From Podarcis bocagei (lineage: Eukaryota), in NCBI GenBank assembly GCA_964188305.1, contig OZ076889.1: 64,000 bases of DNA; one strand, given 5' to 3'. The position numbers and the translations under genes were made by a program. The notes below the pieces were generated by a model. It had not been told where the DNA came from, ran no database searches, and worked only from the letters and a program-made list of their open reading frames with translations. The stretch's first letter is position 1. Every line of letters starts with the position of its first letter. Below, piece by piece: positions 863-3,340 of the stretch.

Positions 863-2230
863 CTATTTTTCAGAGAGTTTCTTTTTCAAAGAGGCAGGCA
901 TCTCAGGTGGTGGGGGCCGGGGTAGCTTGAGATAAACCTTAACTGAGTCATAGATGAACCACTGCAGGGCAGTGAGGGTGCCAATCATTAAGATGCGGGT
1001 AAACAGCCCTTTCCAGATGCCTTTCATGCCCAATTTCTTGAGGACGCCTACAGCAGTGCTGCCCTTTTCTTTATTGAGCACAGATATCACAGAATCAGCT
1101 GGGTGCGAGACTACAGCGCAAAAGACGCCAGCAATATATCCACCAACAAATGTGACTCCAAGTTGTTCCATTTTGGTGCACTGATCCCGTGGTTTGGGCA
1201 TGACGTATTTGTAGAGAGCCTCTACAGTTCTTTCAAAGCAGGAAAACTTCATCATGGTGTAAGGGATCTGCCGCATCCAGAGTGGAGCCACCCCCTTGTA
1301 GAAAGCCCACAGCCCTTCTTCAATGTACATCTTGGGAGCTGCCTCCCGCAGTGTGTTGGCAAAGCCATGCTGGGTCTGAATTCGTACCTTGGCAGCTTCC
1401 ATTGGGGACAAAGCAATGTCAGCAAAGAACTCAGCACTGGCTGAAGCAGCGAGGTAAACGCTGGTACGCCACAGATAAGCTTGTTCGGGACCCAACAAAT
1501 CAGAGTAATATATCTTGAAGTACTCGTAGAGGCCAAACTTGGCAAGTCCTTGCATGGAGTAGCCTATGGCTGTTGGAGCCCACCCCTTGACCAGACCATG
1601 CATTCCCTCCTCTTGCACAGTGAGACTAAGCCCCTGAAAAAGACCCCGATAGCGCGTAGGTTCCACCTGCATGCGGCACTTCACCACATCCAGTGGGCAT
1701 ACTGCTGTGTGGGTTGCGCCACAGCTCACCACGCCACCCAGGGAGCATAGTATGAGGTAAGTCGTTGACCCATACTCACAGCTATACTCTTCCTCTGGTG
1801 GAGGTGGAGGAGGGGCCGCTTTTTTGGTTGCAGCTGCTGCTGACAGGCAGCGCCGATGTTTGCACAGAGAGAGTGGACTGCTGTTCAGGGAGGCCACTGC
1901 ATCCATGGCCCTGTAGCCGCCTGAGGCCTTGCACAAAAGTGGGGGTGCAGGGCTGCCGCTGCTGTTTCCCTGAGAGCTCCAGGAAGCGGGGCAAGCAACT
2001 GTCCAGAGGCGAGACCAGAGCTTGGGGTGGGGGTATGTGCAAGACCTAGAGGCCTCCATTTCCATTTTCTCCAGGTTGCTGATGGATCTGCTGTCGATAC
2101 CTGTTCTCCAGGAAGTATAGGCAGCTGCACTCCACAGCCAAGGTATGTTCTGGGAGGTGGTGAACTTGGTGCTGCTAGTCTCCTCCTTCCAGGAACTGCA
2201 TTTCCCCTGGTCTGCAGAAGGACAAGGCAT
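863..2230 (-). CDS. SLC25A3: Mitochondrial phosphate carrier (PiC, SLC25A3-like), intronless retrocopy with intact ORF; start codon uncertain (ATGs at 2230, 2065 and 1906)
   Basis: The translation follows SLC25A3 colinearly from EEYSCEYGS...THTAVCPLDVVKCRMQ through GWAPT, LAASASAEFFADIAL, LWMRQIPYTMMKF and LQWFIYDSVKV to PRPPPPEMPASLKKKL. Carrier signature motifs PLDVVKCR, PMEAAKVR and PADSVISV are present. No introns, stops or frameshifts. The frame is open up to 2380 (TGA at 2381-2383). The ATG at 1906 has a GCCATGG Kozak context and gives 347 aa; the ATG at 2230 gives 455 aa. Confidence 0.9.
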   Translation of the reverse strand: MPCPSADQGKCSSWKEETSSTKFTTSQNIPWLWSAAAYTSWRTGIDSRSISNLEKMEMEASRSCTYPHPKLWSRLWTVACPASWSSQGNSSGSPAPPLLCKASGGYRAMDAVASLNSSPLSLCKHRRCLSAAAATKKAAPPPPPPEEEYSCEYGSTTYLILCSLGGVVSCGATHTAVCPLDVVKCRMQVEPTRYRGLFQGLSLTVQEEGMHGLVKGWAPTAIGYSMQGLAKFGLYEYFKIYYSDLLGPEQAYLWRTSVYLAASASAEFFADIALSPMEAAKVRIQTQHGFANTLREAAPKMYIEEGLWAFYKGVAPLWMRQIPYTMMKFSCFERTVEALYKYVMPKPRDQCTKMEQLGVTFVGGYIAGVFCAVVSHPADSVISVLNKEKGSTAVGVLKKLGMKGIWKGLFTRILMIGTLTALQWFIYDSVKVYLKLPRPPPPEMPASLKKKLSEK

Positions 2231-3340
2231 ATTCAGCGCAAGGGAGAAGGGCCAGGAGCAGATTAATGGCTCCTTTCCCAACTGCCACGAATCCCAGGGT
2301 TCTTCTAACCATAGAGACTCGGCTTCCAAAGGAAGGATAGGCCCTCCCAGTGGGTGCGGACTGTACACTGCCACAAGGCCTCAGTGGGACAAAACAGGCC
2401 TAGCACTATAGAAGCAGGCTTTTAAATACATAAAAGAGGATGGGCACTGGTTATGTTGCCCTAAGGATTAGACTCTCTTTAATAGTAAGATTTAACCACA
2501 ATGTTGAAGAGTTTGCTTGAGGTTAAAAGTAACAGATGTAAAAATGCATTTGTCTTCCATATTTAAATAACCAGAGGCTGGTTGTTCACTCATTCATTTC
2601 TTCCTAACACCTTTGGGAGAAATAAGACAACATGGGATTCCCCAAAAGATGTTAAGCCTTAACTTTTAACTGCTAAAGGTTTGAGTTTGATGTAAATAAA
2701 GTAGACAGTGGTTGTATGTTACTGGCTAACAGATAGCCAGCATGGTCCTAGTGGCTATATGTCACTCAGCATAAACTAAATGGCACCATGATCTCCTAAG
2801 GAGGAGGTGCATGTATACTTAGAAAACAAACATTACTTATTGGATGTTAATTGTGAAAAAAGGTAGGTTGTTAGTGGAAAATAAAGCCGGGTGAAAGAAG
2901 GGCAATATAATGGGAGTTACAGGATAAAAGAGGGATACAGAGAAGTGGGGATTTCAGGATAGTGTTTTGTGGTAGAATGGATTATCTGAGAAATCTGCAT
3001 GACCAGTGCTTGTTTTGTAATGGTACTCACTGATAGAAAGTACCATTGCATCCTTTTTTTTTTTGTTGCCTATGGCAGCCATTTTGTATTGTCTTTGATC
3101 AAGATTACATAAATAAATAAATGTCTCCTGCCACTAGATTTCTGAGCATCAGAGTTTAAAATAGTGATCTTTTTAACCTGAGTGTATTATTGGGGATTGT
3201 AATGTACATAAAGCTAGTTGGATATTTCCATCTCATAGTCAGATTAACCCTCCAGTGTGTGTCCAGGTGTAATCTGTCAGAGACCACATACCAATGATGG
3301 GTGGGGCCAGAGACAAAAGTGTATGGGACACCCCTTCTCT

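Follow-up and report, generated by a model that had tools for sequence, protein, structure and literature searches.

Beside DMRTB1 in the lizard Podarcis bocagei lies an uninterrupted coding sequence that resembles the mitochondrial phosphate carrier gene SLC25A3. It occurs in a stretch of 64,000 nucleotides (nt) from contig OZ076889.1 of assembly GCA_964188305.1, which we refer to in its entirety as the window. The question that this locus raises is whether the gene is a recent processed copy, a pseudogene that happens to have stayed open, or an old retrogene that still encodes a working carrier. The original prediction described it as an intact, intronless SLC25A3 retrogene arranged head-to-head with DMRTB1 and as a possibly functional counterpart of human SLC25A3P1. 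The analyses described here indicate that the Podarcis gene is very likely the ortholog of an ancient, functional SLC25A3 retrogene present across the amniotes.

An intact single-exon carrier gene and the constraint on it

The minus strand of the window holds a single uninterrupted open reading frame (ORF) at 863..2374, which runs for 503 codons from a GTG to a TAG stop at 863-865. Together with the three Mito_carr stretches recognized in its product (Pfam PF00153, E value of 6.5e-46), this frame confirms that an intact, intronless ORF covers the whole carrier; the end first assigned to it, 2380, lies 6 nt too far. In-frame ATGs are located at 2230 and 1906 and would give products of 455 and 347 amino acids (aa), respectively, the latter from the context GCCATGG. 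The NCBI model of P. raffonei likewise begins at this first ATG and is 455 aa long, and the two products are 99% identical. AlphaFold predicts an ordered core from approximately residue 141 on (predicted local distance difference test [pLDDT] values of 62 to 93), with helices between residues 156 and 454 that comprise six long helices plus matrix helices.

All of the best 120 protein matches, the listing to which our statements about matches refer, were SLC25A3 or SLC25A3-like proteins (67 to 99% identity), whereas a sequence search of solved structures reached its nearest carriers (UCP1 and others) only at an E value of 4e-14. As originally described, the product differs from canonical SLC25A3 by many, largely conservative substitutions (~77 to 78% identity to the nearest canonical proteins over 88% of the query) and keeps all of the signature motifs. 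Two PX[DE]XX[KR] motifs read P179-L-D181-V-V-K184 and P276-M-E278-A-A-K281, and the third is atypical just as in the canonical protein (P377-A-D379-S-V). P179, D181, K184, P276, E278, K281, P377, and D379 are invariant in the core protein alignment. When we considered the 225 core columns that are invariant in canonical SLC25A3 from lamprey to mammal, the squamate copies kept 193, the mammalian copies also kept 193, and the turtle, crocodile, ostrich, and tuatara copies kept 210. Moreover, C162, C170, H174, C185, and L274 are invariant in 40 of 40 aligned sequences and correspond to H75 and L175 in mouse and to C21, C29, and C44 in yeast PIC2. Mutagenesis has shown that mouse His75 is needed for both substrates and Leu175 for phosphate, and the three PIC2 cysteines have been tied to transport (PMC7924939). 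Since the canonical columns and the residues tied to transport by mutagenesis are kept, the product is very probably a six-helix inner-membrane carrier that, like its parent, imports phosphate with a proton as well as copper.

The substitution pattern points to purifying selection on an old copy. In codon alignments of ten copies, the ratio of nonsynonymous to synonymous substitution rates (dN/dS, Nei-Gojobori method) for the core was 0.08 to 0.16 between pairs of squamates, at dS values of 0.3 to 0.8; it was 0.119 between Pteropus and Cebus and 0.125 between turtle and ostrich. Core values within the range of 0.08 to 0.16 were thus obtained in three amniote lineages. For two phylogenetically independent squamate pairs, the core dN/dS was 0.109 (bootstrap 95% confidence interval [CI], 0.071 to 0.153), which is far from 1.

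Origin and age of the copy

The parent SLC25A3 is a multi-exon gene with alternative exons 3A and 3B, and these alternatives appear as X1 and X2 isoforms among the protein matches. The copy, by contrast with its parent, is a single exon in the window and in the DNA of the nine other species that we read (Pteropus, Lepidochelys, Cebus, Rhineura, Candoia, P. raffonei, Sphaerodactylus, Struthio, and Varanus), with the ORF intact in all ten; the Struthio copy comprises 316 codons and has an assembly gap directly upstream. In Trichosurus (brushtail possum), the span of the gene equals the length of its coding sequence. The exon-3 segment resembled isoform B more closely than isoform A in 14 of 14 copies tested (tuatara, 0.83 versus 0.67; turtle, 0.81 versus 0.67), which fits descent from a spliced 3B mRNA. 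The single exon in ten species and the exclusively 3B-type segment bear out the assignment as a retrogene. The reported lack of a poly(A) remnant was also upheld, since no A-run of at least 8 nt and no AATAAA or ATTAAA was found in the 862 nt 3' of the stop (target site duplications were not searched for). An insertion older than 300 million years would be expected to have lost its poly(A) tract, a loss that has no bearing on origin.

Two oddities concern the records for Sphaerodactylus townsendi, in which the genomic ORF is intact at 397 codons: the NCBI model excises 36 nt as an intron, and the UniProt model ends in an unrelated C terminus. Both look like annotation artifacts rather than biology.

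The neighborhood of the copy is conserved as well. DMRTB1 is represented on the plus strand by its DM-domain exon (ATG at 6891, DM motif at 6936, ORF 6858-7397), whose product is 97% identical to P. lilfordi DMRTB1, with the DMRTB1 proteins of Podarcis, Zootoca, and Rhineura as best matches. This arrangement places the two genes head-to-head (divergently), as had been claimed, with 4,661 nt between the ATGs at 2230 and 6891. A divergent DM-domain gene is likewise found upstream of the copy in P. raffonei (4.2 kb), Varanus (5.1 kb), Candoia (6.6 kb), and Sphaerodactylus (7.5 kb). On Cebus imitator scaffold KV389748.1, an intact copy of 333 aa (556,798-557,799, minus strand) and DMRTB1 (576,563-583,827, plus strand) are divergent and 18.8 kb apart. 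The predicted syntenic copy thus exists in other amniotes, placed divergently beside DMRTB1 in four other squamates and a monkey. According to match tables, the copy and DMRTB1 also share one contig in Loxodonta, Dipodomys, Trichechus, Marmota (one scaffold of 1.37 Mb), Pteropus alecto, Mauremys, Caretta, Rhineura, Elgaria, Lerista, and Sceloporus. A search of ±10 kb around the copies of bat, turtle, amphisbaenian, and ostrich revealed no DM domain; synteny for the bat and the amphisbaenian is that of the shared contigs, and Lepidochelys and Struthio stand outside the synteny evidence. In humans, SLC25A3P1 maps to 1p32.3 within a SLC25A3P1/DMRTB1/GLIS1 cluster (PMC11641332, PMC9434983, PMC7904932), in agreement with the location on 1p32 beside DMRTB1 given in the original prediction, and it is treated as an untranslated pseudogene (PMC10070997).

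Models named "SLC25A3-like" or "phosphate carrier protein, mitochondrial-like" with 80 to 92% identity to the Podarcis product are present in every major squamate group (amphisbaenian, lacertid, anguid, iguanian, agamid, skink, cordylid, varanid, boid and elapid snakes, and geckos). Copies also occur in tuatara, turtles, crocodilians, ostrich and rhea, one marsupial (brushtail possum), and many placentals, and cluster listings add five genera of New World monkeys, several bats, elephants, manatee, dugong, marmots, ground squirrels, many turtles, alligator, and rhea. Ostrich and rhea, both palaeognaths, were the only birds seen, there being no neognath copy among the matches listed. Mouse and rat copies were also lacking among the matches listed, which does not show that those species are without one. 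In a maximum likelihood (ML) tree of 231 core columns, which omits the N terminus and the alternatively spliced exon-3 segment, all of the "like" proteins formed one clade (support, 90/89). Within this clade, a mammalian group (brushtail possum, elephant, tenrec, armadillo, capuchin, flying foxes, squirrels, and kangaroo rat) and a sauropsid group (crocodile with ostrich, turtles, tuatara, and squamates) were recovered, and the branching matched the accepted amniote species tree. A second tree of 294 columns, which includes exon 3 and only B isoforms for the canonical rows, separated the canonical from the "like" proteins with support of 99/98. Mammalian and sauropsid copies thus form one clade apart from parental SLC25A3. 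This clade, together with the same head-to-head placement in the monkey and the shared scaffolds in other mammals and turtles, supports the claim of an amniote-wide retrogene.

Since two insertions from the same parent into the same interval and in the same orientation would be very unlikely, we favor a single origin. An SLC25A3 mRNA of the exon-3B isoform would have been reverse transcribed and inserted a few kilobases upstream of DMRTB1, in divergent orientation, before the mammal-sauropsid split. The retrocopy would then have gained a promoter and been held by purifying selection in most amniote lineages, with the human syntenic copy presumably being the catalogued pseudogene SLC25A3P1. Several observations weigh against this account. 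Among three bulk RNA runs and one single-cell run from Podarcis (tissues not given), no read fell on 863-2374. Mammalian N termini are not significantly similar to the N-terminal extension of the sauropsid proteins described below. The link to the human locus is a location given in papers. SLC25A3P1, a catalogued processed pseudogene, has the parent gene and neighborhood in common with the lizard copy, a likeness that rests on its published map position rather than on human sequence. It differs from the intact and constrained lizard copy in being treated as untranslated (PMC10070997). There was no amphibian or fish member among the best 120 matches, and the lower age bound is soft. Lastly, when the mammalian copies were forced to group with canonical mammalian SLC25A3, approximately unbiased (AU) tests gave P values of 0.124 and 0.068, at a cost of 14.6 to 15.8 log-likelihood units.

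These AU tests, which do not reject the forced grouping, could also be read as a sign of two independent retropositions, one on the mammalian stem and one on the sauropsid stem, each upstream of DMRTB1, with the shared residues arising by convergence or long-branch attraction. Both "like" groups do have branches longer than those of the canonical genes, and the mammalian N terminus is dissimilar to the sauropsid extension. Nevertheless, we regard such a double origin as very unlikely, given that the parent gene, the neighbor, the divergent orientation, and the side of DMRTB1 are identical in Cebus and five squamates and that two chance insertions into the same ~20-kb interval of a gigabase-sized genome would be expected with a probability on the order of ~1e-5. 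In addition, the ML trees prefer one clade by the 14.6 to 15.8 log-likelihood units given above, with 90 to 99% bootstrap support, and all of the copies tested derive from the 3B isoform. The tree favors a single origin and does not alone exclude two, and the case for a single origin rests mainly on synteny. A recent processed copy, or a functionless pseudogene open by chance, is almost certainly not what the window contains. The absence of RNA reads, of a CpG island, and of a canonical poly(A) signal in the window flank, as well as the pseudogene status of the human counterpart, might speak for it, but it is refuted by the dN/dS and ortholog data. The core ratio of 0.109 was obtained at unsaturated dS values, and the ORF is intact in 10 of 10 species whose DNA was read. 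Recent copying is ruled out by the 77 to 78% identity of the product to canonical squamate SLC25A3, compared with 80 to 92% to the orthologous copies of other squamates.

The N-terminal extension and the start codon

Under the single-origin account, sauropsid translation would start ~110 to 150 codons further 5' than the carrier needs, yielding a disordered and weakly constrained N-terminal extension. Squamate ORFs continue ~145 to 150 codons 5' of the core to a conserved start, MP(C/W/G)PS(A/T)D..KC. The extension in the window starts with MPCPSADQGKC, contains the island HPKLWSRLW..CP.SWSS, and ends with a CLSAA island; in Rhineura, the conserved start is present in frame, even though the NCBI model begins further down. 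The frame of the extension is stop-free in six species (143 to 149 codons in the two Podarcis species, Rhineura, Candoia, and Varanus and 98 codons in turtle), its indels preserve the frame, and the other two frames contain 1 to 8 stops. In a neutral simulation at 0.2 to 0.6 substitutions per site, an extension of this kind stayed open in 7% to 0.6% of trials. Constraint on its sequence is nevertheless weak (ω of 0.67; CI, 0.48 to 1.0). The turtle extension is similar to those of squamates (z scores of 7 to 11), that of alligator is similar to that of turtle (z score of 20), and that of tuatara is partly similar. Judged by these similarities, the extension would date to the sauropsid stem at least. 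The ostrich and rhea models have a short N terminus (MAAKG...) with no sauropsid extension; mammalian N termini are short as well, and neither the ratite nor the mammalian ones resemble the extension significantly.

Residues 1 to 143 have pLDDT values below 50 except for a short helix at 71 to 79, such that the extension is predicted to be disordered, and no Pfam match was found within it. Its best-conserved island, R-x-(L/W)-(S/A)-A-A at its end, matches the end of the cleavable presequence of the parent. Similarity of the whole extension to the canonical presequence was not significant, with only the short RRxL(S/A)AA island matching, and an apparent likeness between mammalian MCDAGGYRA and lizard CKASGGYRA was dropped because it was not significant against shuffled sequences. 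The simplest interpretation of the extension is a long cleavable leader, a role that would explain an open frame with little constraint on sequence.

Alternatively, the gene could be functional but translated from an internal ATG (1906, or 2065/2059), in which case the extension would be 5' leader rather than protein. The ATG at 1906 has the best Kozak context, the NCBI models of several species start 3' of the first ATG, and mammals and ratites do with a short N terminus. The weak constraint, with an upper confidence limit that touches 1.0, and the predicted disorder would also fit a leader. We nonetheless consider internal initiation unlikely, as the frame has remained stop-free over 143 to 149 codons (98 in turtle), whereas neutral drift would leave it open in only 0.6 to 7% of cases per lineage. 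In-frame stops are reached only 7 to 8 codons 5' of the first Met in Rhineura and Candoia, at 36 codons in turtle, and at 48 codons in the window, and the first Met with its MP.P..D...C context is common to turtle and lizard. Furthermore, the internal Met at ATG 1906, which is present in most squamates, is a Val in Rhineura and Gekko. Table 1 gives the coding sequence from the ATG at 2230.

Flanking sequences, expression, and related carriers

The flanks of the gene also show conservation across squamates. By blastn, the 3' flank is alignable at 185-862 in Rhineura, from 328 in Varanus, from 470 in Candoia, and at 542-695 in Sphaerodactylus. The alignability of 400 to 680 nt 3' of the stop suggests a constrained 3' untranslated region (UTR), and since neither AATAAA nor ATTAAA is present in this flank, polyadenylation may take place past the start of the window. 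On the other side, ~90 to 125 nt 5' of the ATG at 2230 are alignable, with blastn blocks reaching 2317-2356 in Rhineura, Candoia, and Varanus. No CpG island was present upstream of the gene (CpG observed/expected ratio of 0.14 to 0.25). Midway between the divergent genes, the block at 4559-4830 matches, at the corresponding upstream position, both Varanus (74% over 210 nt; E value of 2e-29) and the turtle Lepidochelys (73.5% over 136 nt; E value of 5e-17); ostrich matches it weakly. The block contains no ORF and no Rfam family, a search of window positions 1-7000 against Rfam having added no match. It is a candidate for a regulatory element shared by both genes. A second DM-domain exon is located at 18521 on the plus strand, 3' of DMRTB1.

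Table 1. Positions in the window of the SLC25A3-like gene, its parts, and its surroundings
Feature	Position	Strand	Basis
SLC25A3-like carrier, single-exon coding sequence, 455 aa	863..2230	-	ORF translation, P. raffonei model, Mito_carr repeats, core dN/dS
Carrier core, ~residues 156-455: six transmembrane helices, three repeats, PX[DE]XX[KR] motifs	863..1765	-	AlphaFold prediction, conserved columns
N-terminal extension, ~residues 1-155	1766..2230	-	Frame stop-free in six species; similarity to turtle and alligator N termini
Alternative internal ATG, GCCATGG context, 347-aa product	1906..1908	-	Translation; Met in most squamates
Probable 3' UTR, may extend past window start	185..862	-	Alignable across squamates
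Conserved stretch just 5' of start codon (5' UTR or core promoter)	2231..2356	-	blastn blocks
Conserved noncoding block, candidate shared regulatory element	4559..4830	.	blastn to Varanus and Lepidochelys
DMRTB1 first coding exon (DM domain), divergent neighbor	6891..7200 (3' end of exon approximate)	+	DM motif, ORF, best matches

RNA reads from the four Podarcis runs (~1.7 to 1.9 Gb sampled per run) were placed on positions 1-6000 of the window. All of the placed reads, which numbered in the thousands, fell on a CR1-like long interspersed nuclear element (LINE) fragment at ~3342-3749 (ORFs 3301-3776) and ran on into unlike sequence. We rejected these reads as transcription of the locus, because their unlike continuations show that they come from other transcribed copies of the repeat elsewhere in the genome. 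The LINE fragment itself is absent from P. raffonei. A snake Logan contig was likewise set aside as a transcript, since it is collinear with Candoia genomic DNA, has no poly(A), and is indistinguishable from DNA. The parent SLC25A3 is broadly and highly expressed; unlike it, the lizard gene is silent in the four runs and so is probably not broadly or highly expressed. In one study of human samples, SLC25A3P1 RNA belongs to a set of nine genes whose levels in ovarian cancer exceed those in every nonreproductive healthy tissue by 20-fold or more, a set that also contains the cancer-testis genes PRAME and CTCFL (PMC10070997). The RNA of the human pseudogene hints at a germline-type promoter, although it is not evidence for the lizard. 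Our leading guess, made by analogy, is that expression of the lizard gene is confined to a restricted, possibly germline, domain shared with DMRTB1. Extending this guess, the gene may encode a second mitochondrial phosphate/copper carrier, from a retrogene more than 300 million years old, that would be coregulated with DMRTB1 through the intergenic block and would serve meiotic or postmeiotic germ cells, in the way that ANT4 serves them in ADP/ATP exchange; we put forward this combined picture tentatively, as one that could well prove wrong.

No paper describing an SLC25A3 retrogene or retrocopy was found in a literature search, which yielded SLC25A31 and otherwise unrelated matches, and in databases the gene exists only as automatic "SLC25A3-like" models. 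Its closest comparison is with its parent SLC25A3 (PiC, which is also a copper importer), with which it shares the subfamily, three Mito_carr repeats, ~77% identity, the third motif PADSV, and the phosphate and copper residues. In contrast to the parent, the lizard copy is intronless, exists solely in the 3B form because it lacks the alternative 3A/3B exon, and occupies another locus, by DMRTB1. As judged by branch lengths in the tree, retrocopy proteins evolve several-fold faster, and they carry lineage-fixed replacements at otherwise invariant sites (e.g., residues 182, 230, 248, 363, 411, and 434 of the 455-aa product). The long N-terminal extension of the sauropsid copies and the lack of reads in the four RNA runs set the copy further apart from its parent.

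Two other types of carrier or retrogene invite comparison. SLC25A31/ANT4 is an ADP/ATP carrier paralog that is found in mammals and the anole lizard, has been lost in birds, and is used in male germ cells (PMC3155547). Like the lizard gene, it is an extra carrier paralog with a patchy amniote distribution, the lizard gene type having been seen among birds only in palaeognaths in the matches listed. ANT4, however, has introns and documented testis expression and function, whereas the lizard gene is a retrocopy known from sequence. Testis retrogenes of the PGK2 and PDHA2 type are also intronless copies of housekeeping energy metabolism genes that have been kept by selection (PMC12377818). Retrogenes of that type compensate for X-linked parents that are silenced in meiosis, whereas the SLC25A3 copy is far older and amniote-wide. 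Given that SLC25A3 is autosomal in humans, the rationale of X silencing does not obviously apply to it.

For annotation, these results mean that the "SLC25A3-like" models can be handled as one orthologous group. Accounts of the SLC25 family usually draw on the human and mouse gene sets; if our reading is true, it adds to this family an unassayed carrier that is conserved from lizards to monkeys and that would have been overlooked owing to the pseudogene status of the human copy and the lack of a mouse or rat copy among the matches listed. It would also give reason to look again at SLC25A3P1, which is reported to be strongly up-regulated in ovarian cancer relative to nonreproductive tissues (PMC10070997). 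The sauropsid extension would provide a dated example of a retrocopy gaining a new N terminus, and the locus as a whole would be a case of a very old retrogene fixed beside a germline transcription factor, offering a natural experiment on the purpose of a second phosphate/copper carrier.

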